NCBI RefSeq assembly: GCF_048593235.1
Contig: NC_133618.1
Location: forward strand, 513,565,675-513,629,674
DNA: 64,000 bases
Direction of reading: 5' to 3'
Source: Sminthopsis crassicaudata
Lineage: Eukaryota
Of the stretch, positions 167-64,000 are shown one piece after another (position 1 is the stretch's first letter; each line of letters opens with the position of its first letter). The notes below the pieces were generated by a model. The model had not been told where the DNA came from, searched no databases, and saw only the letters and a list, made by a program, of their open reading frames with translations. Both the position numbers and the translations under genes were made by a program.

Positions 167-222
167 CCGTGTTCCCCATATAACCCTGCCCAGTTCCATC
201 TAGTCCTCACTTGCTGCCTGAG

Positions 223-1008
223 ATGGCTCTGGAGAATGTGTGCAGCTGGCAGGCGCCCAAAGCCCTGTGGCCTCGCCTGCCTGGGGCCGGGGACTGGGCT
301 CTCCCTAGGGGCTGTGAGCCTCATGTTTTTCTGCAGACACAGGGCCCAGAACTGGCCCACGGCACCACCACCCTAGCCTTCCGATTCCGCCATGGGGTCA
401 TTGCTGCAGCAGATACCCGCTCTTCCTGCGGTTCCTATGTGGCCTGCCCTGCTTCCCAGAAAGTCATCCCTGTGCACCAGCACCTTGTGGGTACCACCTC
501 GGGCACCTCCGCTGACTGTGCCACCTGGTACCGAATACTACAGCGGGAACTGCGCCTTCGGGCTCTGAGGGAGGGCCGGCTGCCCTCTGTGGCAGGGGCT
601 GCCAAGCTGCTCTCCAGCATGCTCTTCCGTTACCGGGGCCTGGGGCTGTGTGTGGCCACAGCTCTGTGTGGCTGGGACCAGGCCGGCCCTGCCCTCTTTT
701 ATGTCTACAGTGATGGGACCCTCCTGGCTGGTGATGTCTTCTCCGTGGGATCTGGCTCGCCCTATGCCTACGGGGTGATGGACCGGGGCTACCGCTATGA
801 CATGAGCATCCAAGAGGCCTATTCTCTGGCTCGCCGAGCCGTGGCCCATGCCACCCGCAGGGACGCCTACTCTGGGGGCTCTGTGGACCTGTACCACGTG
901 AAGGAGAGTGGCTGGGAGCGAGTGTCCCGAGAGGACGCCTGCGTGCTGTATGCGAGCCTGCAGGAGACCGGGGACTCGGGAGAAGAGACCGCCCCTCCGT
1001 CCCCCTGA
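223..1008 (+). CDS. PSMB11: Thymoproteasome subunit beta-5t, intronless, 261 aa as assembled (first ATG 223; the ORF track starts at TTG 211)
   Basis: [10 protein letters not shown]...LAHG|[21 protein letters not shown]: propeptide, catalytic Thr1 (codon 364-366), Asp17, Lys33. Hydrophilic beta5t pocket residues S20, S31, T45, T48. SGSPYAYG and RDAYSGG motifs. No introns. Confidence 0.96.
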
Positions 1009-8050: not shown

Positions 8051-11000
8051 TCAAGGGGCAGGGGGCTCCTTTGCCCCATACAGCTCAGCCAAGGTACGAA
8101 AAAGTGGCCCCCAGTCATCCAGGGGTTCAGCGGGCCCTGAGGGGCCACCTGCCTCACTGCCTGAGCCCAGAGAACTGAGGGAGCCACAGGAGGAGCCTCG
8201 GCCTTCATAGCCATACACCTGCACGGAGTCATAGGGTGGGACACCGGGGTCTTCGTCAGCTTCGCGAAGCCTCAGGGCCAGCAGCTGCACCACATCTGCA
8301 GTACCGGGGGGCCGTGGCTGCCGAGGAGGCTGGGCCCTGGGCAGCACGTCTCGGCGTGCCGGAGGAGCGGAGGCAGGAGGGGCCGCCCCGTCGGGGTTCT
8401 GAAGGGCCGTGATGTCGAAGGCCTCTGTGTCCTCCTCACCACCGCCCTCATCATCATAGGTGATGATGTTCTCTCGAACGTCCTCCTCCTCCAGCACCAT
8501 CAGTGCCTCTTGCTTCTGTCGCCGGAGGGCCACGAACAGTACAACCAGGGCTGCGAGGAGGGAGAAGTCAGCTCTCCCGCACCAGAGGCCCCCACTTCTC
8601 TGGGACAAGATCCCAGGCCCCACTCAGGGCGTCCCCTTTCTTAGTGTGTCTGTGCCAAGGCTACCCCAGGGATGTCCCGCTCCTGCCTGGCTCCCCCTAA
8701 TGTCCCACCGTGACCCGCGGGGCCTTTTACCTAGCAGAGTGCCCACACAGGCAAGAATAGCAAGCAGAGCCCCGGTGCTGAGCCCTGCCGGGGAGAGCTG
8801 AGCCTCGGGCCGGCACGAGGTCACCGAGCCATCGGGCTTACAGCGGCATATGCTGATCGTCACCGTGGCCGTGCTGCTCAGGGCCGGCTGGCCCCAGTCT
8901 CGCAGCTCGATGGGCACCAGGTAGGGCTCCCGGCGGGGCGACACCAGGCGGGGGGGCAGCAACACACTGGCAGATCCATCTACAGAGAGAAAGACAAAAT
9001 CAGAGATAGAGAGGGAGACAGAGAGAGAGGAGAGACACGGAGAGTGAGCAAGAGGGGGTGGCAAGAGGCAGAGGGACCAGGGCTGAAGGCAAGAGCAGGG
9101 TGGCTAGAACCAAGCCCAGAGGCGTTTTAGGCCATGCCAATCCATCTTGGTGCAGTGGAAGTCATGAGCTTCAAGGTCGGGGCAAGACTTAGGAAGGGGA
9201 GATGTACACATTTATTAAAAAAAGAGAGAGAAAAGCAGTCAGCAAAACAAAGCACAGGCCCATCCCCATCTGTTATTTTTGGTTGGTGGCAGCACCCTTG
9301 CTGGGGGAGGAGGGAAAACAGACAAGGTTAAATTGGGGGTAGGGGGTAATAGAGGTGAACTTGGGTGAGAATCACGGTACGAGGGGCAGTACGTTGGGAG
9401 AAGCTGTGCGAGTTACAGAGGGCACATCATTTGCAGTTGCAGAACGGTATGGAGTCATCCTACTTGCAATGAGCTTGCCAGCCCCCTGGCCCAGCCCTTC
9501 CTGTGTTCCTGACCCTGGAGGATAGGGCTCTGGAGGAAGGGGGGAGAGGAGGGGTCCTGGAGGGACATACTGATGCACACTAAGGGAAAACTTAAGGCAG
9601 AGAGATGGGATATTTGAAGGTATGTGGGGGGGGAGTCACCTACCTCGATTGTCTCGGACAGTGAAGTTGGCATCGGGGCCCAGGGGGCTACTCAGGGAGA
9701 CATAGCTACTGTTGCCAACTTCATCCCGGTCCAGAGCCCGGACAACCTGAATTAGCTGTGAAGGAGAGGAGGGCTCAGAGCTCTCAGAGCGCCTGGGGAC
9801 CCTGCCCCACCTCTGGCACGGAAACAAACTGTACTCACCTGGCCAGGGGCAGCCGTGTCACACACAAAGGTGTCGTAGGGCTCGGCCAGCTGCGGGGCAT
9901 TGTCATTCTCATCAAGCGTCTGGATGGCGACCTGTGCCCGGGAGGCCTGTGCAGAGCTGTCTGAAGTCAGAACACACATGCACATCCCTACACACGGGCC
10001 CAGGGGCTCATCTACACACGCACGGAGCCCATAGAGGCCGGCAGCACGGGCTGTGTGCCGGGGCCCACCGAGGGTGGGCCCACCTCACTAGAAACGTGTG
10101 CAGGGACTACATTCAGCAGGGTGCACACACATGCAATGTCTGCCTCCACCGTCCTGGAAGCTCATGCACTCCCAGGAATCCAAGCTGCAGCTGTGAGCTG
10201 AACTTCCCCTAGGGGCTCAGAATGTATGGGCAAGGGGGGGCCAAAGTCAGAGCGGCCTTTCCACCTTCCTGTTGGTCCTGGCCCTCCCTCCAACACTCAG
10301 CCCTCCCTCCTCTGCTTAACTCATGCCCACCCAAACAGCTGGCCAGATGCCCTCAAGAGTCAGCCTGCAAGATCATCAGCTGTCCTCCTGTCACCTGGAT
10401 CCTACCGCCTCCCCCAGGCTGAGTCACCCTACTTCCATACACTCGCCACCCAGCCCTGCGGCTCTCGCCCAGCCTTCCCTGTATCCCTAATGCTGGGAAC
10501 CCCAGGGGGGCTCTGGAGAACATGCTGCAGTGAGACTCCAAGACATAGAAGGGAGCATGGGAAGAGACCCTGTCCCCAGCTTTGGGCCCATTAGACCCAC
10601 GAGAAGGAGACGTAACCTAACGAAAGCCAAGCATTGCAGACAAAATCCCTGGATAGAAGTCTGAGGAGGTTCCCCCCCACCCCCGCCCCAACTCGGGGGC
10701 CTACGTTTGATTGCTTCTGCAGTGAGCTCTGACAGGGTGGATGAGAGGGTCTGAGTGTGGCAAGAACAGGGAGAAGAAACATCCCAGACACAGGAAGGGG
10801 ACAGCCTGTTTGATCCAATGTTTACATTTAACAATTTAAGTAACAAAGTGTTAGTGGGTTTGATGAGGGGAAGGTAGGAACCCTGAGGACAAGAGTGCAC
10901 ATTATAGACTTGCACATGAACACAAATACATTCGTCCGTTCATGTACGATGCACAAAACCGCACCGGCATAGCAGAGCATACACACATATCCATGCACAC

Positions 11001-14000
11001 CCATAGACATACACATCCACAGAGAGCAGGGAATACACAAGGCATAACCTCCCTCCCCCCCCCATCCCTTGGGGATAGATGGTCAGCGTTGGGTCCTAGG
11101 AAGCAGGGGGGAAGCAGAGCAGTTATGTAACAGGGAGTGGGGAGGGCAGGGGGAAGGGAGAAGGCAACACTGAGGCTGCCTTGGCCGAACAGAGGTGGGA
11201 ATACAGCTCTCGGGGGGCCCTGGGCAGAAGCAGTGAAATGCCCAGACTGAGACAGATGGGAGAAGGGCCAGAAATATCATGGCCTGCCCCCTTCCATGCT
11301 CTTCTCCCCCCCCCCAACCCCTGCAGATTTGTAGCCCCACCTCTTCCCCTCCTATCTGCCTCTTCTTGGATCACTCTCATTATCTTCAGTCAAATTTGCA
11401 AACTTCCTAAAGCTAAATAAATGTCAATGGTTATTACTCTGACTAGTACAGCCTAATGGTTACAGTGCTCAATTCAGAGTTGGGAAGAGTGAATTCAAAT
11501 CCGGTCTCTTACTAGCTGGATGGGCAAGTCACTTAACATTTCAGCCTCAGCCTTCCCACTTATTTGGGACCTAATTTTTTGATGTTTGCAAACCAATAAA
11601 TTGCTATAGGGATGTCTTTTTTCTTTTTCTTCCCTGAAGCAGTAATTAGAGAAGGAGTGGGCTATGTCCTGGTTGGGAGTCTCTGGGGATGGACGACATA
11701 GTATGGATGGGAGTACAGTAGGGGGTGGTATCCGGGGTGTCAGGGCTGGAATCAGAGTTGGAGAAGGCATATCAGGGTGCAGCATTTGTGGGAGATGGAA
11801 TAAGAACTCAGAGTAAGAATCAGAAGATTTGAGCCATGCTTCTGGTGGTGAAACAAAGGCTAGACACAGCAGCCTCTGTTGGGCAGCTGCACCACCACTT
11901 CTGCTACCATTAGGGTTTCGCCAGCAATCTTCAGATCCTCCAGAAGCAGGAATCGGTTCTCTTTTTGACTCTTCCCTCAACACCCATCTCACTTCCACCA
12001 GCCACCGAGGGACCCTTGCTCTCCCTTACCAAGTTCAGTGGCCAGCACAGTGAGATTGTGCCAGGCTCGAGCTTCACGATCCAGAGGCACAGACGTCCGG
12101 ATGGTGCCGTCCTCAGGCTCAATGGAGAAGCAGCGCTCGGGGTCTGAGTGGGGGAGGATGGAGTATCTGGAGAGAAGGGTGTCGGAATTAGTAGCTGGGG
12201 ATGGAGCAGGAACTACCTGGAGGGAGGCTCAAGAGCTCATCTAATAACTGACCTCCACTGGGCTTTGTGCTTTTGTCCTTTCTTTACAGCAACTCTGAGT
12301 TGCCAGGCTAAGTATTAGGATCAAAGACTTAGAGCCAGAAGGAAATTTAGAAAGCAGAACTTCTGTATTTTACAGATGAGGAAACTGAGGCCCAAAGAGA
12401 TTAAACTGACTTGTTCAATATCATATTGGTAGTTAAATGAGATAGTTAGGATTTGACCTCAATCCCCCAATTCCAAATAGCCTTGTTTCTCCCATGCTAG
12501 ATGAAGCCATTCTATGAAGGGGAAATTGGAATACAGAGAACTTAAGTAATTGCCCCTGGTGCCCAAGGAATGAAGAAGGAAGCAGTGATGTTTCCCCAAC
12601 ACCATGGATACTAGGGTTTGGAATATCTCGATGCCAATCTCCTAGGTTAATTCTCATAGCTGCACTTGGCAAAAAAATTGAGCTCTTTGGAATCAGGGCC
12701 AGATTCACTAGTAGAATCCACCTGGCATAATTTCTGGAGCCCCAGGAGGGTCCCTTTGCTTTAAATTATCTCCTCACTGGAGGATTACTTTGACTGAAAT
12801 CAGTCCTCTTTGGGTAAGCCACCTAGCCAGATACATCTCTGGGAGGGAGAACAGAATAAATTGTGAGCAGTCATTAACACCTTAGGAGGAATCACTTAAT
12901 CAGATCCTTAGAATATGAATAAATAAGTTTACCAGATTTTAAGACTTCAGTATCTATGGGAAATGGTAGAAATGGAGGTATAGAGGGTGAGCTTTACCTG
13001 GAAAGACAGGACTGAGTAGGGTGTTATGGTGTGGATTGGGAGGAAAAGGAACAAGGGATGGAGGAGAGAAACAAACTTTCCTGTCTACAGTTTTGCTGAA
13101 GGTGGAGGGAAAAGTCCTGCTCCTGGAGTCAGAGGGTATCTCTGTCCAGAAAAGAGATCCAGAGGGACAGGGCAGCCTATCTACAGACTCCCCCAAATCT
13201 GGGTTGCCCTTGTGCTCATACAGTCTGTAGTACTTAGGACTGGGGGAGTAGGTCCTGAGGAAGTTCAACCATTGGTTTCTCCTGTCTTAATAGCATTGGG
13301 GAAAATGGATGCTTGTGGGGAAAGGGTTGAAAGGAAACCGAAGGAGATGAAAGTCTGGGAAGCTACTGGAGAGGGATAGGTCAGGAATTGAGAAGTTAAA
13401 GAAGGCCACAGACTAAAGAGGATACAAGGAGAAGCAGGGGCTAGGGGGGCATGGGGTGGGAAGAGCAGGAAGAGCACTAGAAAGTCTTTAAATTTTGATA
13501 TTAAATGACTCTGAGAAGCAAATGAGAGTGGGTTTTGAGCTATCATTCGCTATTGAATAGGATAGGGCTGTGGTCCCCTGAGACTCACCTGATGGGGCTG
13601 GCAGGTGAATCGAGGTCTGTAGCAGAGACACGGCCCACCAGGGTGCCAGGGGCACTGTTCTCAGGCACAGCCAAATGGTAGGTGGAGTGGGTAAAAACGG
13701 GTGGTTCTGGAGCATCCTGGACTGCCACACGGACAGAGGCCACATCCTTGAAGGGCCCACGACGCAGGTAGGCTGGATCTATGAGTGTATTTGTGGCCTC
13801 TACTCGGAAGGCATAGGATCTACGGCTCTCAAAATCCAAGGGCTAGGAGTGGGAGAAATCAGGTTGGTAGAGGCCGAGGTGGCACCCTGGAGCCCATTGT
13901 GTCCCTCCTAAACTGGATAGACTGCTCTGTCCTGGGCCTGGGACGCTGTCTGACCCCAGAATAAAGCCAAGGGTCTGGGACCAGACATGGTCTGGTGATA

Positions 14001-16315
14001 CAGTTCCCTTTCCTGGAAAGAATGGGAAGCCCTAAGATCTGGGAAGCCTCTGGGGATCCATTAAAGCAGGAGGAAGAATGATTCAATTAGAAGCATATAG
14101 ATGCTTACAAGCAGGGATGCTGGGTGGCCTGCCACCCCCTTCTCCCCCGCCAAGGTAATTAAATAGATAGGTGTGCATCTGGGGCAACGTCTCAGAAAGT
14201 GGAGCACAGAAGGTGGGAATTGGCTTGAAGTGGAGGGAGAGTGTGTCAGGTGGGGCACACCTTGCGAATGGTGAGGAGCCCATCTTGGCCTTGGGCATCA
14301 GTGCTGATACTGAAAGTCTCAGCTCCCTCCCCATCCAGGATGCTGTACGCCATGAGGGCATTGTCTCCCAGATCAGGGTCCTGGGCTCGAAGCCTGCCCA
14401 CTAGGGCCCCTGGTCCTGCAGTCTCCACCACTGAGAACTGGTATAGGCCTTTGAAGAGAAGGAGGAACAGACTCAGAACAGCCCCTTCTCCTTTCCCAGA
14501 TATTCCCATTTCCTAGAAAAAGTGGAAAGGAGGACCCTGGGAGAATTCCTCATTCCTTTTGCTTCCATTTCTCTAGAAAGCTCCCTTGAGTGTCTCCCTT
14601 CACCCTGGTTTGTAGGGAATCATAGAGATGAGCAGAAGGCTTCCCCAGGGCTACCTTCCCCCCTCTCAAGAGAAGTGGCCTGAGGGGAATGATTCAGAGT
14701 ATGAGGGAAATATAGATAGAGGGGCTAAGAAATAGAAGTCCAGGCCTAGTCAGATAATAGACTCCAAGAGCTAGCAGACTCAGGCAGCCCAGAGAAGAGG
14801 ACAAAGAGGGATTGGAGTTGGTGGCCTTACTTTGAGGGAATTTGGGGGGGGTTGTCATTGACGTCGCTGAGAGTGACAGTGACCGTGGTGCTGCCCGACA
14901 GCCCCCCCATGTGGCCACCCATATCCTTGGCCTGAATCACCACCAGGAACACTTCCTGAGTTTCCCGGTCCATGTTGGGGATTGCGGTCCGGACCACTCC
15001 TGAAAGGAGAGGGATATGATGCTAAGTTAAAGACAGAGAGGGGAGTTTTTCTGATCCCCATTCTCACCCTTCATCAGGCATCCTTTAGAGCCTTTCCCTC
15101 TGCTGCTTCCAAACCTCACCAGTCTGGGGATCCACAGAGAAGAAAGGCAGCCCATCCAGCACCGTGTACACCAGCTTGGCGCTATTCCCATAGCTAGGAT
15201 CATCGGCGTCTTGAGCTGTCACCTGAATCACTGATGTCCCTGCCAGGGAGTCTCCTGTCACCCCCAGCTCATAAGGGAGGGAAGGAGGGGGTCAGGAGAG
15301 AGGGGTGCGAAGATGGTTTGGGCAAGTGGCCATGGAGCATGTGTGGACTGATGGCCTGGGAGAGGAGGAAGGGAGGCAGTGCCCTGAAGAGAGGAAAGAG
15401 CCCTGAGCCATGGAGTGTGCAAGGGAGTATCCTAGAAGAGGGGAGGACATATTTTAGAAAGGTCTGGAGGAATGGGATGAACCTAGTCTGGAGAACATAT
15501 AAGTTGGGAGTGTATAGCTTGCTACGGGAGAGGCTTAAGGGGGAGAGAAGTCTGGCTTATGCCATAGGAAAAGTGGGGTGGGTGAAAAAAAGGCTTCCTC
15601 ACCAACATTGGACATCTCTGGCACAGTGGCATGGTAGGGCCCGAGGGGGAAGACTGGTGGGTTGTCATTGATGTCTTGCACTTTAATGATGAACTCAGAC
15701 GGTGGCTCTAAGGGCCGGTTGGAGGCTCTGTCCACAGCCTGGGCCAGGAGCACATACTGGGCCTTTTCCTCCCTGTCCAGGCTCTTGGTGACGTGGATGT
15801 TGCCAGTAGCCTCATCAATCACAAACACGGTACCTGCTCCCTCTCCTGTCAACAGGTATTTGGTTCGACCCTCACCACGATCCACGTCCGAGTGAAGCTG
15901 TAGAGGACACGGAGTTAGGGGTCAGATATGAGGGAAACACGGCGAGGAGAGAGAGCACAGCGAGGGGGATGGACACAGGGGATCAGAAGGCCCATGCTTG
16001 GCGACAAAGGTCTTGACCAAGGTGAGGGAAGGAAATGACGTGGGTCAAGCTAGGAGGAAGGGTCAAATGGTTGGGAAATTTGAGAATGTTTTGAGGGGTG
16101 GGATTAGTTCTTACTCTGCCAATGAGGACGGGTTCAGGGCCAGCATACTCCTCGATGACGAAGAACTGGTTCCAGACCCAGCTCCTTCTTGCCCGAAGCA
16201 GTGTGGGCCCCTGGCCCTCCCTGATCCCAGCCCATGCTTGGGCCGGGGCCACCAGCCTCCCTGCACAACCCCAGCTCCCCAGCCAGGCCAGCATCAGCCG
16301 CACAAAGACCCACAT
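8051..16315 (-). CDS. CDH24: Cadherin-24 (type II classical cadherin), 11 coding exons; 781 aa if the extra G at 14844-14851 is removed
   Basis: Coding exons, all GT-AG: 16315-16115, 15897-15603, 15239-15120, 14999-14831, 14448-14261, 13842-13589, 12166-12030, 9960-9839, 9755-9644, 8979-8731, 8550-8051. Motifs: signal peptide [13 protein letters not shown], furin site RARR|[25 protein letters not shown] calcium motifs, TM segment, p120 site [10 protein letters not shown], catenin site [13 protein letters not shown]. Sum is 2347 nt, one more than an in-frame 2346. Confidence 0.95.
11450..11590 (+). mobile_element. MIR relic in a CDH24 intron
   Basis: gtgaattcaaatccggtctcttactagctggatgggcaagtcacttaacatttcagcctcag is a MIR core. 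Confidence 0.6.
12355..12460 (-). mobile_element. MIR relic in a CDH24 intron
   Basis: tattttacagatgaggaaactgaggcccaaagagattaaactgacttg is a MIR core. Confidence 0.65.
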
Positions 16316-17039
16316 GCTTTGAACCCGGTTCTGGTGTTGGCTCAGCACAAGCTCTACTCACTGACCCACCAGCCCTCTCCCCACGGTGATGCTGTCCATG
16401 TGGTGGGTGGGGCCAGCAGGGCAGGCGTGTGGGGGCTACCCCATCAGTCCAAACCTGCAGAAAAGGGATTGGTTAGCAAGGGGGAAGGGCAAGATGCCCT
16501 CAACCCCCCCTCCCCCCGCTGGGCACAGGGTGACCACTCCCCAGCACCCTTACTGTTAGTGGGCTCAGTACTAAGAAAAGGAATTAAGGGTTTGGGGAAA
16601 AGAGAACAGATAGGACCAGAGAGGCTCGAATTGGAAGGGAGGCAGGGAAAGAGACAAGAGTCCCCACACCTGCGTGATCTATTCCCAGTCCCAGCCGGCC
16701 CCATCCCTCCCCCTGCACCATCCCTATGCTCACCTCTGGCCCTCCAAGTTGCCAAATTTCTGGTCAGTCACAGTGCAGCCGGAGAGCTGGGGAGAAAGGA
16801 GAAAGATGGGGAGAGGGTCAGTCCGAGGGGAGGGCCCGAGTGCTCTTCCTCTAGCCCAGCTGCCCCTCCAGCACAGGGTGACCCGGGCGCGGTGACTAGG
16901 ATCTCTGCCCAGGGAGCCGAGGAGGAGGGACTGGGGAAAAGGGCTGGGGCAAACTGGCCGGGCTCAGAGGGGCTTGTTCCGGGGGGTGTGGCCTAGGATA
17001 TTGGGGGGGGGGGGTTGAGAGGCCAAGTGGAGGGAAGGG

Positions 17040-22400: not shown

Positions 22401-25400
22401 TCTTCAGAGTAAACAAGTAGAACTACCTCCTGATTAAAAGAAACTACCTACCTGTACTTAAAAGCAACAAATCACAATTTGCTTAGTGGGGGTTGTGTGA
22501 AAAGGAAAATCCCTAAGCAGTTTAGCTTTTCAAATGGAGGTAGAAATGACATTTAAAATGCAGGGAAAGAAAAGGGCCAAGAGATATATGGTTCTTTAAA
22601 AAAACAAACAAACAAAAAATACTACAACTGCTATTTATTAAACCCTCTCTAGCAGAATGAAAAACTCCTCTGTGAGATATTCACTATTCTCTGGCTCTAG
22701 GAACTTAAAAGTTTTTGAAGGAATACACCTCTCTCTACACAGAAAAGTACTAAAACTGCAAAGAACAAGAAGGGAGACAGAGTGAATGGACAGTAGGATA
22801 TGAAACATGTCACCGTATATGTCTGTGGGCAAAGAAGTAATAAGTCTTACTATTACTTGGAAACTAGTATAAGTATAAGGAGTTCAATGGGACTAGAGAA
22901 ATAGCAAAAACCCATACTCTTGGAGGACAAAGATGCAAAGCAATAGAGAAGTATTATCTGCTCCAACACAAAGTCTGGTTGCTACGGAATCCCTAAACAT
23001 CAGTGATTTAAGTCTGGACTTACAGACAACGGAGATCTTCCTCTTGAAGGATTTGGGCATCGAGCTCTGTATAGAGAAGAGAAGGGGAAAAAAAAGAGAA
23101 AGAGACACACCCCACAGAGAGGGGGGGAAGAGGTTAGATGAGGGTAGTTTCAGCACAGGCTCCAGAGACACAGAGTAAGAGAGACAGAGACAGACAGAGA
23201 GACCAAAACAGAAGCGGCAAACGGCAAAAACGGAAGCGGAACCGATGCAAGTTAGAGAAAAAAACAAAACCAAACGTCACATCGGGGAAAGGTCCGTCCA
23301 GTCCACACCATGCCTGCATATTAGCTTTACCAGAAATAAGTTGAAAAGAAGACTTTAGGGTGTAGTAGCTTCCCCCGCTCTTCAAAGATGTTGCCATGCC
23401 CCCTTCATAGTCCTGGGTTGAGACATACTTGCCCAGATTCTGAAGCCACTGCCTCAATTGCCCAGAGTTGGCTAATGCAGTCCTCCTTGCCCCCTATTAA
23501 CTCAGGTTAAAAATGAAGGAACAAAGAAAGCCAACTTTGGGATAGGAAAGGCCTTAAGGATCTTCATTTTCCTCCCTTTAATGACCATCCAGTCTACCAA
23601 TGAAAAAGACTTTAATCCCTCATGTATAAACTATTTTGCTTGTATCCTATTTGCAAAATGCTTTTGTACTATAGAAGGTTGGATTCCAAAGATTTGTTAC
23701 CTATAATCCTGATATCTTTTAGAGGAAGGCAGCCCGAGACCAACTTGACTGGAGGTGAGTGAAGTAACAATTGTAGAAAGGTCTTGAAAAGGACAGCCTT
23801 TTATCACCTGGAACCTCCCTCAGCAACTTACTTGGGCCCATGAGGGACTTACCGTTCCTTCTCCAACCAGGACTCATGCCTTATGGGCTTTAACTGAGGA
23901 CTAGAAGGTGGCTTTGAGACAACTCCCTTCCTCTTCCCAAAGGAAAGGGACTACGAGCAGAGCAGAAGGGAAAGGCTAAGAATGGGGGACAGAGTCGAGA
24001 ACCTTTATATTTGCATGCTTATTTCTGGAAAAACTAAGGCCACCCTTCTAAAGGGTAGAGCAGGACTCTTGACAAAATCTCTTCTTTCCACCTCCCTCCC
24101 CAACCCTGCTTCTGTCATCTAACCAAGTCTCCTTGGTCTCCGTTAAGGGCCAGCCTGACCCCAGCCGGGCCGCTCTCGACGGGAAAGTTAGTGAGAAAAA
24201 AAAAAAAGTCTTAATTAAAACAGGAAAAACATGAACCAAATAAATAAAATCAATAAAGAAATCAGAAAATTAAAGAAAAAAGGGGAAAAATAAAATNNNN
24301 NNNNNNNNNNNNNNNNNNNNNNNNNNNNNNNNNNNNNNNNNNNNNNNNNNNNNNNNNNNNNNNNNNNNNNNNNNNNNNNNNNNNNNNNNNNNNNNNNNNN
24401 NNNNNNNNNNNNNNNNNNNNNNNNNNNNNNNNNNNNNNNNNNNNNNNNNNNNNNNNNNNNNNNNNNNNNNNNNNNNNNNNNNNNNNNNNNNNNNNNNNNN
24501 NNNNNNNNNNNNNNNNNNNNNNNNNNNNNNTGGTCGGCGGCAGAGCCACAGTCCTCCCGGGGGGCGAAGGGGGGGGCAAGGGGAAAAATTGGGGGGGGCA
24601 GTGCCCAGTCTCCAAGATGTCAGACAGTTCAGTGGTGGTGCCCGGGCTCAGCGAGGGGCAGAGGGGGAAAATGAGGGGACAGCAGTCCCAGCCCTGTATG
24701 GGCACCATCTTGTAGTCCCTGATGAGGAGGTGGCCACTGAATGGCAGGAGTGGCTCATGCCCTGGATTACGAGAGGCAGGCATGGCCCCCAGGTCCACCA
24801 GTGACAAACTGCAGCAATAACAACTCAAAGATTTGCAATCCAGGTGATAGATGACTCCAGGGTCTTTTTTTCCTCTGCCTGCAACTAGGTGGGGAGGCTT
24901 TTGATCAGATGTGGCCATGGCGCCTCAGATGAAGGTGCCCCTGGAATTGGGTAGACAGACATTCCAGGTGAAGAATGACAACTGTAAGGCCAGGCTGCTT
25001 TTCTTCTCAAGAGGGTGTGGCTTCGCCTCAGAGAGCTCCAGCTGGGACAGTGGCTCCAGTCAGGTGGATGGATGGGTCCAGGCCCCTGCCTCCAAGGATG
25101 GAGAAGTGGTAAGAGCTGCCAGCATACTACCCTCCACCATGTGTAGCCAGGGACCAGAGGAAAGTCCATCTGATGAGTGAGCAGTGATGTAGTAGACTGG
25201 GATGTCACCAGCATTAAGTCCCTGGGGCTTAGACCTTTGACCTTCTGCAGGATCCTCAGTTGTTGAAGCTTATTCTGAGGGCCCCACTTTGGTATCTTAA
25301 AGCCTGCTGCCATGTCCACACATGGCTCTTTAGGGAGGTTTTGTTGCCCTAGAAAGGGAATCCAACAGTCTGTAGAGAACAAGGAAGCCCCCAGCAGAGG

Positions 25401-28400
25401 CATATGGATAGGGGCCCCAGCACTGATAAAAGTTCTTCTTGAGGCATCCCAAGTAGGGAAATGGCACAAGTCCGCCCCTTTCCAGATGTACTTTGCTTTC
25501 TGAATACAAGTCTCTCCTGAACAGTACTCTTCTGGCCCCCTGCTGTAGGCAGGGCAGGGAGGCAGGTGTGGGGAGCCCCCCCCAGGAGCCCACATACAAC
25601 AACCCCCCTTCTGGCCGAGGCACCAGGATAGCAGACTCGGCTCTTACTGGGCAGCTCAGTAGCAGCGGGTGGGTCCAGAGGAGGAGNNNNNNNNNNNNNN
25701 NNNNNNNNNNNNNNNNNNNNNNNNNNNNNNNNNNNNNNNNNNNNNNNNNNNNNNNNNNNNNNNNNNNNNNNNNNNNNNNNNNNNNNNNNNNNNNNNNNNN
25801 NNNNNNNNNNNNNNNNNNNNNNNNNNNNNNNNNNNNNNNNNNNNNNNNNNNNNNNNNNTACACACACAACAATCCCACCCACCCTGTGCCCCCAGCTCCC
25901 AAACCCAACTAAGACTTTCTCTATTACTACAACAGCCAAGGAGATTTTGCTGGCTCGGATTGGGGCAGTCCTTGAATTGGATGCATGGCATGAATGAATT
26001 AAAGAAAAACAGAAAGGATCACCATGGATAAAAACAGAGAAAGGAATTCTCCATGAAGTACACTTATATACATCTCAGCAAAGGGACCACTGGGGGGCAG
26101 ATAGAGAACTCGAATTTCCTCAGCATGGTTAGTCTATGGTGAAAAATCCCATAAGCCCACTAGGGGGCAATGCTTTCTAACAGGATAAAAAGGAGGGAAA
26201 GCAAGGTGACTATCCCCAAGAGACTGAAGATGATAGTAACAAAAACTGAGCTCTGAGTTTGAAAAAATAATTTAAGGAAGGAGGAAAATCCTAACAAGAA
26301 CTAGTGCCCCTAGTGTCAGCCTACCAGGATATAACTAAGCAGCCCGAAGTAAAAAGAACAGCTGAGATTTAGAGCTAATGTCCTAGAAATCTGTAAAGGA
26401 GAAAGGAAAAAGAAAAGCAGAATAGTGTCCCCCTTAATTCAATCTCCAATTGATCAATAGAAGAGAAGAATCCCAGGAGCAAAGCTTTTTTTTTTTTTTT
26501 TTTTTTTTTAAACAAGAAAGAAATATTAAGCCTCATTCCCAATACAAGGGGCATCCCTTGCTAAACCAGCAAATTCTCCCTTTTGGCCCTACACTGATTA
26601 ATGTCCTGTCTGCCGCTGGGACCTACAGGTCCCAGATCTCTACTGAGCAAAGATCTGCCTTGTCCCTTCATTCTGAACTCATCCCACTGTTCAAAGGGGG
26701 TCACCAGAGTGGCCTACCCTTTTTCCCCAAGGGTTGTCCCCCACCCTCACCAACAGGAGGCTTTGAAATTTACCTCTTTCTTCTCCTCATCCTCTGCATT
26801 GCCCTCAGGGCGCTCTTCATTGCTTGCAGCATCAGCAATGGGCATGGGGGGCTCAGGCACCTCATTCTCAGGCCTGTTTTCAGCTGTCTCCATGGTCACT
26901 TCCTCCTTCTCCTCGCTGACAATATGGGGGGAGGAGGGGGGAGGGTAGGAAAGGAAGGGCAGGAAAAGAACCAAGGGGAACAGAGAGCAAGATGTTAGCT
27001 CGTGAGTCAGGAAACCCCCATGCTTTGTCACTGGGGATGGGGGTGGGGTGGGGATGGGTTTGGGATACTTTCCCTATCATATAAGTATTTAGCACCTACT
27101 GACTGCCTCAGTTCTTTGGGCTTGAGGCCTAACTCAAGTCCAGAGGAAGAGGTAAGATCTTCTTTTACCCTAAGAAAGAAGGGCAATTAGCACTAATCAC
27201 AAGAACCATATCCTTCCCAGCCAGGCTGTGATGGGTCTGGGGTATTGAAGCTTTAGTGTCTCTGGCACAGTCCAATATCACTAATCAAGGTTCAGTACAG
27301 GTTTTTATTCCTATCTTCAATGATCCCTCACGTGATTCTATCAAAACTGTCAGTTAATAAACACTTATTAAGCATCTATGTGCAAGACACTTTTGGGGGT
27401 CTTTTTCTCAAAAAGATGATAATGTCTGGTCATGGCTATTGTCACTGATCTTAGGTGAAAGCCTATCCAAAAGCTTAAGTAGCTTTTAAATAGTCCATTC
27501 ACTCATCTGACCTGGAGATACCAGGAATGAAGGAAAAAAACAGAGGGTTACCTCACCAAAAAAAGGTTTTAAGCCCCCACCCTTTCACCTCCCCTCCATC
27601 CTGACCAGCTTAAGGTAGAACTTAAGGTAGAATCGTATACCTTTTACCAAGAAGGTGCAGAGGCCACTCTGATATTCAGCTGACCCAGCTTTTCCCAGTA
27701 TCCCACTCTTACTTTTAAAGAATTAAAGAGCTAACCACTCTTAAGTCGGAACACACCTATCATTTCCCCAAATACCCTCAATGCTTTGAATAACCCTCCC
27801 CTTATAGCAAAAGCACAGAATCCTTGATCCCATTCTAGAATACACAAACTGCCCCCCCCCATTCCCACGAAAGTAATTCCAGAGATCCATCTTTGAATAA
27901 ACTGCCTCTCAATCTTTAGTCCCCACCCCTAACTTCACTCTCCCTCCCCCACATGCTTTAAAAAAACAAAAAAAAAAAAAAAAAATCAAATCAAGATGAC
28001 CAGGGGCCTAATTCTCTGGAGGAGAAACCAAGCCTCCTGGCGTGATAATAACCACCAGGAAATCCAGCAGGCTGATAGCCTGACATACAGAGGTCAGAGA
28101 GTCTCCAGAGAACAGACTGAAGAAGGCTGTTGGGGGGGGAGGGGAAAATTTATACAGTGCCCCAAGCTAGCAGGCCCCGACAGAAACACTCAAGGATTTA
28201 ACAGTCTAAATTTAAAGCACAGGCTAGCCTGAAAAATGCCTATTCCCCACATAGAAAGGGCCTGATTGATATTAGGCTAGAAAGACAAAGAAGAGTAAAG
28301 CAGGATGTCTAAAAACAATTAAAAAAACAAAAGGAGAAATGAAGGCCACAGGGGACAAGAGAAAAAAAACGAGGAGAGGAGGGACAGATGGGAAAGGGAG

Positions 28401-31400
28401 GAGAGACATGGAANNNNNNNNNNNNNNNNNNNNNNNNNNNNNNNNNNNNNNNNNNNNNNNNNNNNNNNNNNNNNNNNNNNNNNNNNNNNNNNNNNNNNNN
28501 NNNNNNNNNNNNNNNNNNNNNNNNNNNNNNNNNNNNNNNNNNNNNNNNNNNNNNNNNNNNNNNNNNNNNNNNNNNNNNNNNNNNNNNNNACCTTCCTTGT
28601 CCCCAGCTCCCACCACCTCCTCCCGGCCCCAGATCCAGAGAGAGAAAATCAAGAGATGCAGCAACTGGGGATCCAAAAAAAAAAAAAAAAAAAAAAAACA
28701 AAAAAAGGTAAATGGAAGGGGAGGTGGTGGTGGTGAGGGGAGATTGAAATAATATATCTGGCGTTTAAGAGATAAGCGTTAAGTCCTCACGGCAAACCCC
28801 GGGTTGGCTGGGCCAGTCTCTCTGGAGAAGGAGGAGGAGGAGGAGGAGGACGGCCAGGTTGCTAGTAGTGGCTGGCTCTATTGTATTGGAGGAGCGGCAG
28901 CGATCAGCCGGAGACATGCAGGGGAGCCATCTTGCCACTTACCCAGCAGTCTGTGTGCAGAGAGGGGAGGGCCCTGCTGCAGCAGGGGAGGGGAAAGCTG
29001 AGGAAGGGAGGGAGGGAGGGGGCGGGCAGGCGAGCGAGTGAGCGATCGAGGCTCTTCTCCTTAGGCAAAGCAGGCCACGGGGAACTCGCTCGGGGTTGGC
29101 TGAAGAGGCCTGGCCTTTCCCCCTTCGGTACTCACTCGAGTTACAATGGCTACCAGGGGCTGACCCCAGGGGGAGGCCTACTCTCTCCTAGTCCTCAGGA
29201 GAAGGGCCGAAGGCGGGGAAAACATCGAAAGTTAATGCTGCTTACTTTACTTGGAAGCTTCCAGAGGACGAGGAAGAGAAAGAATTGGATAAAAGAGATG
29301 GGTGAAGAACAAGGCAACAAAGCCAGGGATGAAGCAGATATGGATAGATAGGATATAAGCAGGAGTCTCACTGTCTTCCCCCTCCCACCACACACCCATA
29401 GCTCCCCTCCCCCACACTCCCAGGGTGGAACCTGAAACCAGATCAGCCAGTCGGAATCCTAGGGGTTGGGGGGGGGAGGTGTTAATTAACTGTACTACTG
29501 AGTCACCATGGGAACAGGTCAGCTTTGCAGCTGTAAGGCCCATGTGTTACTCCCCACCACCCCTTTTCTCAAGGACAGCTGGTTACTGGAAAGTGAGAAG
29601 GGAAGAGAAAAAAGATAGGGTCTCTAAAGAGATGACAAAACTTTGTTTGGTAGTGCTTTAATAATGCCATCTTTGCCTCACGGTAGAAACACAAGCAAAG
29701 AAAAAGACTGAGGCAGCCTTTAAGTGACTTGAGTGTGAGAGATATTCGGCCCCAGGCTGCTTGTTCCTCTCAATTTGAGGGGAGAGCAATGTGACTGGGA
29801 GGGGGGGGGGTCAGATGCTCTAGCTTCTAGTCCCAGTTCTACAACTCCTTTTGCAGTCCTTAAATCAATTCCTTTACTCATCTGGGTCGTTTTCTTCATT
29901 TGCAAAATGAGGGCATCAGGATAGATCATTTGAAAGGTCTCATCCAGCTCTAATGATTTATGATAACTAAGAGGGGACCAGGAATGAAGTGAAGTTAAAA
30001 GGATGAGGCAGAAGAAAAGCCTATGCTATACAGGAAGGAGCAGCCTGAAGTCCAGAAGACAAAGTCAAGCAGAATCATTACCACCATAACAATGGTTTAG
30101 TGTGGAAGTTATTTTTGACAAAATGAAGCATGGGTAGGCATTCAATAAATATGCGTTGCCTTAAGATCTGCTTCTAAGAGTAACCCCAAGTCCAGCATCT
30201 CTCTTGCAAACACCAAACTTTTAATCTCAGAAATGAGGCTTCCTCCATACCCAGCGAAGGATACTCTAGGCTATAACCTGGAAAGCTAGTAAAGGCCTCA
30301 CTTCCTTTCTCTCTGCTTCTCAATGACCAATCTAACCAATCTGTCACTTTTACTTGGCTGGAAGACTTCCTAAATCAGGTTTTTAAAGGCCTTAGCCAAC
30401 ATTAATTCATATGTGAATATTTAATATAGATCTTATTTGAAATGATTCAGGTAATTTTTGGGATACTCTAAAAGTTGGATAGTTCTCTGACATTATGATG
30501 ATGAAGTGATTGATGGTTTCAAAGACGTCAATCTAGATATGAAGTAGATGCTAAATAAATGCTTGTTGAATATATATACAAGGGATTTCCCTAAAAATAT
30601 TTTATACAGAATATCCATATAAATCATTACCTTCCAACACCTTCCATTTTGAGCTGGGCTGAGATTACCACCTACTGTCCTGAGGTACTTTCCAACTGGT
30701 AATATCCTTCCCCAGAAAAAGCTTCCTTTAAGGAAGAATTCTGTATTAAAAGTGTGAGGTTATCGTGCTGTCCTTCCTCCCTTGTCCTCAAAACTGTAGG
30801 AATTCTTACCATCCCTCCATCCTTCTCAAGACACAGCAGGTTTGTGCTTTTCATATGCCCAGATTATCCTATTAGAATAAATTCTGTGAATGTGTTAAGA
30901 GATCAAAAACCTCATGAGAAGAAAACAAAACATAACCTGAAAAGTGAGGTGGTAGACTAATCTCTCATAACCTTAGCTCTAAGATTGTTTTAGTGAGCTT
31001 TTGCTGTACCACTCATATCTTAGGGGAAAAAAAGACATGTTTTATCCTTTGCATTCATTTACAAATATCCCTAATAAACTTAAAAGTGTGAAAACTCCCT
31101 TTTATGTATTTCCACCCATTATTAGTGGTACAGTATAGTAAGATGAAGCCCAGACGAAAAGTACAGTGTAACCTGGAGGTAGGAAATTCATGTTAAGAGT
31201 TCAAACTGAAATGAAAAAAAAAATGTAAATAGGAGTTCAAATAAATAGTTTGGACTAGTTAATGGAAAAACAAAATAACACACTACATACACATGGTGGA
31301 ACTCAAGCCCCAAAGTTATTCCAAACGATTCAAGGGAACTGAAAAAAATTGCTATGGAAAGACCCTAGGGTTTGGTAATAAGGATTCCAGATTAATAATT

Positions 31401-60534: not shown

Positions 60535-60954
60535 ATGTCACTGAAATCACCTGCTGCTTGGATATCACCATCCTCCTCCTCAACTTTAGCCACTACTCCA
60601 GACAATTATTCCTTCCTCTCCATGTCTTACTTCACTTCACAGGAGATGAAGTGTGTTCTACATTGGTTTGCCAACTGGTCAGATCCCCAGCGTGAGCGTT
60701 TCCTGCAGGACTTGGTAACTAAGGCAGTGCCAGGCAAATTACAGCCCCTCTTAGAAGGATTGGAACAGCTTAGTGTGTCTGGAGCAGATCGACCACCACA
60801 CATTTTTGATTGCCAGCTTCGACTCTGGGATCAGTGGTTCCGAAGTTGGGCTGAAGAAGAGCGCAATGAGTTTGTCAGACAACTGGAGGCCAGTGAGCCA
60901 GACTTTGTAGCAAAGTTCTATCAAGCAGTGGCTGCTACAGCTGGTAAGGACTAA
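60535..60954 (+). CDS. C14orf119: C14orf119 homologue, 139 aa, single coding exon (acceptor cag| at 60533, 1 nt before the ATG)
   Basis: MSYFTSQEMKCVLHWFANWSDPQRERFLQDLV...FVAKFYQAVAATAGKD matches the recalled human protein; head-to-head with ACIN1 as in human. Confidence 0.93.
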   Translation: MSLKSPAAWISPSSSSTLATTPDNYSFLSMSYFTSQEMKCVLHWFANWSDPQRERFLQDLVTKAVPGKLQPLLEGLEQLSVSGADRPPHIFDCQLRLWDQWFRSWAEEERNEFVRQLEASEPDFVAKFYQAVAATAGKD

Positions 60955-62134
60955 TAGAAGTCAGTATTATAAAAAACAGCATATGGCTCTTAAGGAGTTG
61001 AGTTGAGAGCTTTTGATGTGGGAATGCCTAGATGTAAGGAAATGTCTGGGATGACATCCACGTCTGTTTTCAGAGTTATTGTTATTGGACTCCTAACCTG
61101 TGGATCACAATAGGTTTTAAAAACTAAGCCAAACCTCATTATTAGCTATTCTGTTTCCTTCACCTTGTCCTAAAATTCTTAACTCTGTCATCCTGATTTC
61201 CTTTGAAAGCTTTGAAAAGAAGCCTGATATCCTGACATCAGGAAAAGGTCTCCCTAGAATTGGTCCACTGGAGGGGGTAAAGGATGGAGGAGTAAATGGA
61301 ACTCCTGAGAAGGGAGCAAGCAATGGACAATAAGTTACCAGGTGGGCTTCAAAAAGCTTAGATAAATCTAGACCAATGATTTACTACTGTACCTTGTCTG
61401 GTTTGGTTTGTAAGCTAAATGTTTGGTTATCAATGGGTCAATCAAATGGAGGGATAGAACAGTGATTACATGCCAAGCTTAAGGAGCTTTGGTTCTTATC
61501 CAATGTTTACAATATTTTTGGAGTCAGTAACAAAAGTTCTTATCTCAAAACTTTGCTCTATGAAGATTATGAAAACAAATGTCAAGTCCTATGGGATGGA
61601 AGGTTTATTTTTATAATTCAAGAAATATGAGGTTCTGGGAATACAAAAACCAAAAATGGCCTTTGCCCATAATGAGCATACAGATACTTGTACAAGAATA
61701 AAAGAATGATCTTGTTTAGTCTAAATGACTTCTTTTTTTCCTTCTAGGACTGCCTTGGGCAAGTAGAAATTTGGGATTACAAATATAATCCATCTTCATC
61801 TTCTTAGTAGTTCCTCCTAGTTTTATAAAATCTTCATTCCTGATTTAGGGTTTTACCCATTTTTCCCTTCTATATGAATGAAAATATGAATTGTCATCCA
61901 TTGTTAATTTTTTTTCCTCCCTACCCGTCTGTGGCTGAGGAAAGGCATTCTTGTTGCTCTAGGTTGATCCAGAACCCTGAAAGAATGCTCAAAGATAAGT
62001 TCAAACCCACATATGGAAAGATATTAAGTGCCTATTGTGTTTCAGGAATGCTTCTGAGCATTTGGGAATGTAAAAATTATAAGTCCAAAAGTCCAAGCCC
62101 TTGAGAAACTTAGATGATTCTCTACCCCTCCCCC

Positions 62135-62265: not shown

Positions 62266-62450
62266 GGAGAAACTTAGATTCTTTGGGAGTGGGAAGGATA
62301 TAACATACAGTCAGTAGGCATAGATAACAACTTGTGAAAAAAAATATAGAAATACAGGGTACATCACACGGGTCTGAAAAAGTGAGATTAGAGACAAATT
62401 GTAAATGTTAAGAGGGACATACGCTGTTCTAGATCCAAGGTAATGTCACA

Positions 62451-64000
62451 TTATGCTTCTCCCATTCCTTCAGAGAGGCTTCTTATTGATCCTGGGAGTT
62501 CTGATGAAGGATTAGAAGCTGATGGTACGACTCGAAGGGAAGCTTGGTATTTCCTGTAGGCCATAGTTCCCCCTGTACCCACCAGAATAAGTAGCATGAG
62601 ACTGAGGCCTATGGGCAGAATTATACCTGGATTTGGGGAAATGAGACCTGATGAGGTCAGCCACCTAGATATAAAAAAGGAATACTTAATGATTAGTTTT
62701 TTGTTTTTTTAATTTTTTAAAGGAATTTTCATTGTATCTCCTGAAATTCTAGGGATATCTCTTTACCACCAACCTAAGTTGTCATCTTCACATAGCAGAG
62801 TTTCTAAAGTAAGGGAAGAGAAAACTAGATTATAGAAGACCTTAAGTGTCCTTTCCAAGTCTTATGTAGCAGCAACTAAATTCATATCATTTCAGGAAAC
62901 TTCAGTATCAGGAAAGAGGTCTACCCTAACCTATGTTGGTGGATTTTGAGGTGAGTCAGGACTACTGATCCCAAAAGCAGGATTTAATAGAAAAGGATCC
63001 TGGATGATAACCTTGGAAAAAGTGGGACTTTGATTCCTTCGGCTTGGAAATGGAGAAGTTCTGTAATTTCACCTGATTAGCAAAAGGTAATCACTGTTAA
63101 TCAGGGGCCATGTCTTTGGATAAGATTTTATATTTTTATAACATAGGGCTGTGTAGGTGTTAAATGCTACTCCTGTCTTTTGGGCTTAAAAGTGCCAAAG
63201 AGTATATGTTGGAATGGCTCCTTACCTATTGTAGTCTGTGGTAAAGGTGGCTTCGCCATATTCCACATTTAATGGTGTATCATTGAGGGATTGACTCAGA
63301 GCTTTATATAGGATCTCAATTGGGGGACCTTGGCATCCAGGAAACTCCCACATGTGCACAGTAAACACCAGGTTAGAGTTTACTGAGGGACTGTGGAAAT
63401 GGCACCTGAATTGACATTACAAAAAGGATAGAGTAGATGAAAGAGTTTCATTTTTTCCTCATATTTAAAAATGTAAATCTCTTGAAGAATAAATTTTAGA
63501 TTTAGGCATTTAGAAAACTGGGTGTCGAAAAACAAATATAGCTTCTTTGGAGAAGGGATATAGAAGTTAGAACCTGGGACCCTTTCAATCCTGACTTAGA
63601 TGTAATATGAGTTAAATATTTACATGTGGGTGTCTGCTCTGATCACCAGGGCCCGCAGTATAGCTTGGCTCAGTTCCTGATACTGCATCTTACTCAGGTA
63701 ATAGCTTGTGGGCCCAGTAAGTCCTAGGGGCAACCGGATCAGCAATCCCAGGGAAAAAGGCCTTGTAGTTGAGAGACGAAGAGACATGCGGTCCTTATTT
63801 GCCTGGCAGAACCGGACCCAGGGACAGAAGAGGAGGCCATGATACCCAGGGACCTGGAAGGAGAAATAAACATATAGCTAGAGGCTTCAACTACATGTTT
63901 CTCATATTCTCAACTATTCCAGATGGGGGGTCTAATTTAGAAGAGAACCATTTTTGTGATCTCTTTATAAATAAGAGATTACTCCCAATTCTTACCTTAA
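62451..64000 (-). CDS. CIROP: CIROP (LMLN2), leishmanolysin-like left-right organizer metallopeptidase; 3' part only, runs off the window end
   Basis: Exons 64000-63996 (tail, |gtaaga), 63853-63624 (VPGYHGLLFCPWVRFCQANK...LSQAILRALVIRADTH), 63405-63226 (CHFHSPSVNSNLVFTVHMWEFPGCQGPPIEILYKAL...FTTDYN), 62664-62451 (WLTSS...IGLSLMLLILVGTGGTMAYRK...GMGEA*). GT-AG sites; phases 0/2/2 close with no stops; C-terminal TM helix; syntenic position next to C14orf119. Confidence 0.88.

Follow-up and report, generated by a model that had tools for sequence, protein, structure and literature searches.

An intact CIROP gene in the fat-tailed dunnart whose membrane anchor is omitted from public gene models

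Leishmanolysin GP63 is a GPI-anchored protein. CIROP (LMLN2), the ciliated left-right organizer metallopeptidase, has the catalytic fold and the zinc-site motifs in common with it (PDB 1LML, PF01457), and the Dromiciops (monito del monte) orthologue matches 1LML both as a full-length model (E 1.6e-12) and by sequence (E 4.6e-10). In Xenopus, Cirop is found on the cilia of organizer sensor cells and works downstream of both flow and MMP21 but upstream of the repression of dand5 (bioRxiv 10.1101/2024.10.13.618030). Other publications, among them PMC9808554, report that CIROP, MMP21, PKD1L1, DAND5 and C1orf127 are missing in reptiles, birds and even-toed ungulates, groups whose organizers have no motile cilia. 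The CIROP of the fat-tailed dunnart (Sminthopsis crassicaudata) agrees with that of human, mouse, Xenopus and other marsupials in sequence, exon structure, C14orf119/ACIN1 synteny and domain order, and is as long as the Monodelphis protein (738 aa). It differs from these in lacking 12 codons in a loop of exon 11, in its somewhat faster branch and in public models that omit exons 13 and 14. The last of these is the only new point at this locus: the public dunnart models stop two exons early and lose the membrane anchor.

The window, which is the whole stretch of 64,000 nt that was analyzed, carries on its minus strand at 62451–63853 what we identify with high confidence as exons 12, 13 and 14 of a 14-exon CIROP gene. 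Exon 12 (63853–63624, 230 nt) lies between the acceptor ctccttccag/GTCCCT and the donor CCACAT/gtaaat and is separated by intron 12 (63406–63623, 218 nt) from exon 13 (63405–63226, 180 nt; acceptor tcaattcag/GTGCCA, donor CAATAG/gtaagg). Intron 13 (62665–63225, 561 nt) has GT...AG ends and leads to the coding part of exon 14 (62664–62451, 214 nt), which follows the acceptor tatatctag/GTGGCT and consists of 211 nt plus the terminal TAA at 62453–62451 (GCA TAA). Read on the minus strand across 62301–64000, polypyrimidine tracts and canonical AG/GT signals flank these segments. A sequence-only reading of this DNA had proposed three minus-strand exons of 230, 180 and 214 nt, and the analysis bears out each of them to the base in position, length and splice sites. 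They also join, as proposed, into one open frame: the spliced 624 nt contain 207 codons ending at the TAA, while the other two frames are riddled with stops. The residues at the two junctions (ADTH-M-CHFH and DYN-R-WLTS) are the same in other marsupial CIROPs.

None of these exons had been seen in the open-reading-frame track. This holds for open frames of at least 60 aa but not at a cut-off of 30 aa, where partial frames of 55, 48 and 48 aa fall inside the three exons; the exons were missing because these partial frames lie below the default 60-aa cut-off. The apparent stop after ADTHM had been interpreted as a splice donor (AT/gtaaat), and rightly so: the ATG borrows the first g of intron 12, and the TAA at 63622–63620 is a product of reading through the donor. 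In contrast, the supposed tail of a fourth exon at the window edge has to be withdrawn. Exon mapping places 64000–63996 (TTAAG/GTAAG) within intron 11 as a chance look-alike of a donor. The true end of exon 11 is at position 13886 of a longer locus sequence (L001), on which window position 64000 corresponds to 13915. Exon 11 thus ends 29 nt past the window edge, at the equivalent of 64029, so the edge falls inside intron 11, whose 3′ part occupies 63854–64000 of the minus strand.

The identity of the exons is established by searches with their translations. In a search of 1.84 billion representative proteins, exon 12 gave a single 100% match, to residues 442–517 of XP_074150361.1 (P0001), named ciliated left-right organizer metallopeptidase isoform X2, and it is also 100% identical to the RefSeq dunnart CIROP isoform X1 (P0012). 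Exon 13 is 83% identical to the CIROP of Trichosurus, the brushtail possum (E 2e-35), and 53% identical to that of the cat (E 1e-21); the corresponding values for exon 14 are 81% (E 7e-33) and 52%. The CIROP matches of exons 12–14 are collinear and in the right order. The three segments could in principle be a chance open frame or part of another membrane-protein gene, and searches with isolated exon translations do come back blank: Pfam found no family in any of the three, and a protein-atlas search with exon 12 returned only meaningless matches with scores of at most 0.62. The Pfam result is expected, however, because the Peptidase_M8 profile ends before the region encoded by these exons, and the perfect match of exon 12 to a named CIROP, the strong collinear matches of exons 13 and 14 and the synteny described below leave this explanation a probability close to nil. 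An Rfam scan of the window gave no match.

The relatives of P0001 are equally uniform. Among the 120 matches listed, nearly all are named CIROP, LMLN2 or leishmanolysin-like peptidase, all carry PF01457, and they span marsupials, at least about 80 eutherians, both monotremes, amphibians, lungfish, coelacanth and fishes. The nearest relatives among these matches are CIROP proteins, and neither the paralogue LMLN nor another protein. No sauropsid CIROP occurs among the 120 matches, and the sole cetartiodactyl among them is a model from the humpback whale that carries a LOW QUALITY flag; the two observations agree with the published pattern of CIROP loss. The gene order in the window is PSMB11-CDH24-ACIN1-C14orf119-CIROP. 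C14orf119, a single-exon coding region on the plus strand (60535–60954, 139 aa, DUF4508), is convergent with CIROP, and this DUF4508 neighbor also adjoins CIROP in Trichosurus and Gracilinanus; in a mouse study, Acin1 and Cirop are treated as neighbors. The assignment of the exons to the 3′ end of a marsupial CIROP/LMLN2 gene is therefore upheld by the 100% RefSeq match of exon 12, by best matches that are all CIROP and by conserved synteny.

We then considered the whole gene on L001, a 24.3-kb locus from the same assembly (GCA_048593235.1) that is identical to the window across the 2 kb they share. Mapping with both dunnart RefSeq proteins and the Trichosurus CIROP as queries yields 14 exons, all with GT-AG introns, that together encode 738 aa in 2217 nt with a single terminal stop. 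Comparison with Dromiciops, for which the 746-aa model was placed on the corresponding locus (L002), shows the same exon sizes save for 12 additional nt in exon 1 and 36 fewer in exon 11, both in frame. The exon 11 deletion removes 12 codons, a QVLPFKQVELTG stretch kept by other marsupials, and falls in a loop that differs between species and has low confidence in the model of the Dromiciops orthologue. The dunnart protein model matches PF01457 (Peptidase_M8) with an E-value of 3.5e-25. The catalytic exons lie outside the window, on L001, and keep HELFH, which is the HEXXH motif sought, as well as the third zinc-ligand His in SSHWE and the GSVMTA Met-turn; all three motifs align with those of 32 vertebrate orthologues. 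No stop or frameshift was found across the 11 upstream exons. The dunnart CIROP gene is whole and intact.

The gene also evolves under purifying selection. A single pairwise Nei-Gojobori estimate against Dromiciops, which is not a branch test, gives a dN/dS of 0.316 over all 14 exons (Fisher p 6e-20), a value well away from the neutral expectation near 1. For exons 12–14 taken jointly the ratio is 0.49 (p 0.002), with individual values against Dromiciops of 0.72, 0.20 and 0.58 for exons 12, 13 and 14. These 624 nt contain no indel relative to Dromiciops, whereas introns 11, 12 and 13 contain 40, 335 and 71 gap positions, respectively, and the same introns diverge more than the exons (K 0.41 for intron 12). 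Of 110 columns that are invariant in 32 other vertebrate orthologues, the dunnart protein keeps 109, and the sole change, L169M, is conservative. A unitary pseudogene of the kind that CIROP forms in cetartiodactyls and sauropsids was rejected, with no stops, frameshifts or lost exons and a dN/dS of 0.32.

A subtler version of this explanation is that the gene is intact by chance, constraint having been lost only recently in dasyurids, so that such an early pseudogene would be uninformative about left-right mechanism. In a relative-rate test the dunnart branch is indeed the faster one, with 57 dunnart-unique against 24 Trichosurus-unique changes (p 2e-4), and the 36-nt deletion in exon 11, the high ratio of exon 12 and the lack of a Tasmanian devil or antechinus CIROP model among the matches listed in the protein searches point the same way. 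Small dasyurids are, however, expected to evolve fast in general, and we read the faster branch as that of a fast lineage rather than as a loss of constraint. The deletion is in frame and confined to a species-variable, low-confidence loop, 2217 nt have passed without a stop or frameshift, all catalytic residues are kept, and one conservative substitution is the only change at the pan-vertebrate invariant positions. We consider a recent loss of constraint very improbable.

The dunnart genome encodes a canonical type-I membrane metzincin of 738 aa, with a signal peptide, a Peptidase_M8 ectodomain, a juxtamembrane domain, a transmembrane helix and a cytoplasmic tail. Exon 12 contributes the last Cys-rich piece of the protease ectodomain (VPGYHGLLFCPWVRFCQ), a linker rich in Ser, Thr and Pro, and strand 1 and helix 1 of the juxtamembrane domain. 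Strands 2–5 and helix 2 of this alpha/beta domain come from exon 13 (CHFHSPS...TFTTDYN). Exon 14 supplies a short stalk, the transmembrane helix and a cytoplasmic tail of 39 residues. The core of the transmembrane segment (residues 681–699, encoded at about 62627–62571) is, of all 19-residue segments in the protein, the most hydrophobic (Kyte-Doolittle 2.2); it aligns with the transmembrane segment of other CIROPs and is helical in the full-length Dromiciops model. The frame had been described as ending in a hydrophobic transmembrane segment and TAA; both are present, but the 39-residue tail lies between them. The dunnart C-terminus reads ...GEA, whereas the other therian CIROPs compared end in V (mostly ...EV).

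Structure models were built from the Dromiciops orthologue, which is about 80% identical, and not from the dunnart protein. The AlphaFold model of the full-length orthologue is mediocre overall (pLDDT 59) and has a good block just before the long helix. When this juxtamembrane block is modeled alone (P0131:568-684, with 27 orthologues), confidence rises to a pLDDT of 87.7 and a pTM of 0.81, and the predicted topology is beta-alpha-beta-beta-alpha-beta-beta, a compact, ferredoxin-like arrangement. Among Swiss-Prot models the best match is human CIROP 621–724 (TM-score 0.83), followed by mouse and Xenopus Cirop. In the model, helix 1 of this domain is followed by the boundary between exons 12 and 13. 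GP63 lacks any counterpart of the region that the window encodes, and neither the Pfam profile nor the 1LML match extends as far as the juxtamembrane domain and the transmembrane helix. The same ferredoxin-like topology directly before a single transmembrane helix is seen in other type-I proteins, namely the C-domain of EpCAM and Trop2, SorCS2 and the SEA-type domain of IMPG2. Query-normalized TM-scores are 0.6–0.67 for EpCAM, Trop2 and SorCS2 and weaker, about 0.4, for IMPG2, at sequence identities of 7–11% and E-values of about 0.01. As judged from the predicted structure, this likeness is a resemblance of fold only, and nothing in it points to a shared ancestry or to autoproteolysis of the SEA type.

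CIROP had been called hidden in this genome, which does not hold, as the gene is already named in RefSeq for the dunnart and modeled in other marsupials. The models of Monodelphis (738 aa), Dromiciops (746 aa) and Trichosurus (650 aa) cover the C-terminal exons; the koala model is a 306-aa fragment with a complete C-terminus, the Gracilinanus model lacks the last exon only, and both monotremes have CIROP models. The two dunnart models, XP_074150359.1 and XP_074150361.1, both end in RADTHM, with CACATG/taa closing the last CDS block, and thus stop wrongly at the read-through of the intron 12 donor. Both isoforms are faulty models that retain intron 12, and the retention removes the anchor, splits the juxtamembrane domain after helix 1 and omits exons 13 and 14. 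Isoform X1 also retains intron 5, a stop-free, in-frame stretch of 168 nt that inserts 56 foreign residues just before HELFH, and exons 4 and 5 are missing from isoform X2. Treating the apparent stop after ADTHM as a donor is thus an improvement on both current models.

In several small RNA-like runs that stem from different studies, 95–98% of the sampled words of 62301–64000 are present, introns included, compared with only 5% for a control intron of ACIN1. Unspliced RNA across CIROP exons 12–14 is therefore common; the contigs are strandless. A spliced dunnart fragment was sought among assembled proteins with the Trichosurus C-terminus as query, and only the koala model and a eutherian fragment were returned. 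The unspliced signal may come from unspliced CIROP RNA, or from the plus strand, where transcripts of the broadly expressed, convergent C14orf119 may run past their usual end or carry a long 3′ UTR, and either source could account for the intron-retaining RefSeq models. Pattern scans place candidate AATAAA poly(A) signals on the plus strand at 61697–61702, for C14orf119, and at 63488. On the minus strand, the first candidate past the CIROP stop is an AATAAA at 61604–61609, a match to the consensus only, which would put the length of the 3′ UTR at about 850 nt.

These observations bear on whether the RefSeq 3′ end could be right, in which case dunnart CIROP would be mainly an anchor-less, secreted protein ending in ADTHM through retention of intron 12, with exons 13 and 14 in disuse. 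Both RefSeq isoforms stop at this point, and the abundance of unspliced RNA across 62301–64000 is in line with it. However, exons 13 and 14 jointly have a dN/dS of about 0.35 (p 0.001) and are free of indels beside indel-rich introns, and Dromiciops shows conservation of both their splice sites and their lengths. Truncation at ADTHM would, if the model is right, leave only strand 1 and helix 1 of a domain whose fold is predicted with confidence. The other splicing oddities of the same models, at intron 5 and exons 4–5, are of the kind expected when gene models rest on few, unspliced reads, and the strandless RNA may itself be C14orf119 read-through or a long 3′ UTR from the opposite strand. 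We regard a mainly secreted dunnart CIROP as quite improbable and take the membrane-anchored, 14-exon protein as the probable product of the gene. It is also unlikely, if somewhat less so, that a broadly expressed plus-strand C14orf119 transcript, extended by a long 3′ UTR or read-through, overlaps CIROP exons 12–14 in antisense. If true, such a transcript could help to silence CIROP, or to prevent its splicing, in tissues other than the left-right organizer, and would explain why the annotation pipeline truncated both dunnart models.

By analogy with frog, fish, mouse and human, dunnart CIROP would be located on sensor-cell cilia of the left-right organizer and act downstream of both leftward flow and MMP21 but upstream of the repression of DAND5. 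From the biology of the family we infer that the dunnart protein would be expressed at the organizer, located on cilia and active as a protease. Flow-based symmetry breaking in the dunnart is plausible from the sequence of CIROP, one of the five genes of the module. A search of a limited set of papers found no study of organizer cilia in marsupials; the one paper that touches on both marsupials and the left-right organizer brings up the former solely for their flat embryonic disc and the latter solely in its references. Retention of CIROP is an ancestral state common to monotremes and most eutherians, and is the expected mammalian default rather than a discovery; its retention in marsupials is not new, being evident already from the public models for two monotremes and for five marsupials besides the dunnart. 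The dunnart is an emerging marsupial laboratory species, and the corrected model of 14 exons and 738 aa should be useful for probes, guides and antibodies in studies of its left-right axis, a practical value that is modest. An intact and constrained CIROP in a marsupial is consistent with the published rule that only lineages without motile cilia in the organizer have lost the gene, and it makes flow-based symmetry breaking what one would expect by default in marsupials.

Neither of the two dunnart RefSeq models represents the canonical 738-aa CIROP, and both depart from it in the catalytic exons, which lie outside the window in L001, a 24.3-kb locus of the same assembly in which position 13915 corresponds to window 64000. 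Isoform X1 (XP_074150359.1) retains intron 5 (L001:12240-12407), a 168-nt, in-frame and stop-free segment whose read-through places 56 extra residues immediately ahead of the catalytic HELFH motif. Isoform X2 (XP_074150361.1) skips exons 4 and 5 (L001:11835-12239) and is missing ~90 residues of the catalytic domain.

Further downstream, exon 11 (L001:13650-13886, also outside the window) carries a clean in-frame deletion of 36 nt when compared with Dromiciops, which removes QVLPFKQVELTG. All other marsupials keep this stretch whole or in part, and its final ELTG is kept in eutherians. The deletion site is predicted to fall in a loop modeled with low confidence. A juxtamembrane alpha/beta domain of ~117 residues is present in CIROP of tetrapods, lungfish, coelacanth, reedfish, sturgeon, and rays, whereas the corresponding region spans only 25-51 residues in the three teleost proteins sampled (tarpon P0114, Salminus P0105, and tuna P0106). 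Teleosts seem to have lost this domain or to keep it only in reduced form.

Among the 120 matches listed in the CIROP protein search, none is from birds or reptiles, and the sole humpback whale model (P0097, 51% identity) is flagged "LOW QUALITY PROTEIN"; both fit the published loss of CIROP in cetartiodactyls and sauropsids. A 721-aa spotted-hyena protein (P0056) that contains Peptidase_M8, and whose score places it with the CIROP orthologues, is labeled "ACINU protein, partial". The label looks like a naming error, apparently made because ACIN1 adjoins CIROP. The gene order of the window is that of the chr14q11.2-type block known from mouse, with long ORFs marking single-exon PSMB11 (211-1008, plus strand), the CDH24 exons (8051-16348, minus strand), and a large Ser/Arg/Glu-rich ACIN1 exon (36918-38132, minus strand). 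Several runs of N, either assembly gaps or masked stretches, interrupt the ACIN1 region at ~24300-28600.

Across the CIROP 3′ region (window 62301-64000), introns included, nearly all sampled words are present in small RNA-like public runs, and almost none are found for an ACIN1 intron used as the control (44001-45700). Some broadly expressed unspliced RNA therefore covers the CIROP 3′ exons, possibly plus-strand read-through from the convergent neighbor C14orf119. The first AATAAA downstream of the CIROP stop (61604-61609, minus strand), a candidate poly(A) signal by consensus match only, and the first downstream of the C14orf119 stop (61697-61702, plus strand), likewise a candidate, are oriented toward each other. 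Use of both signals would make the 3′ UTRs of CIROP and C14orf119 overlap tail to tail by ~100-140 nt.
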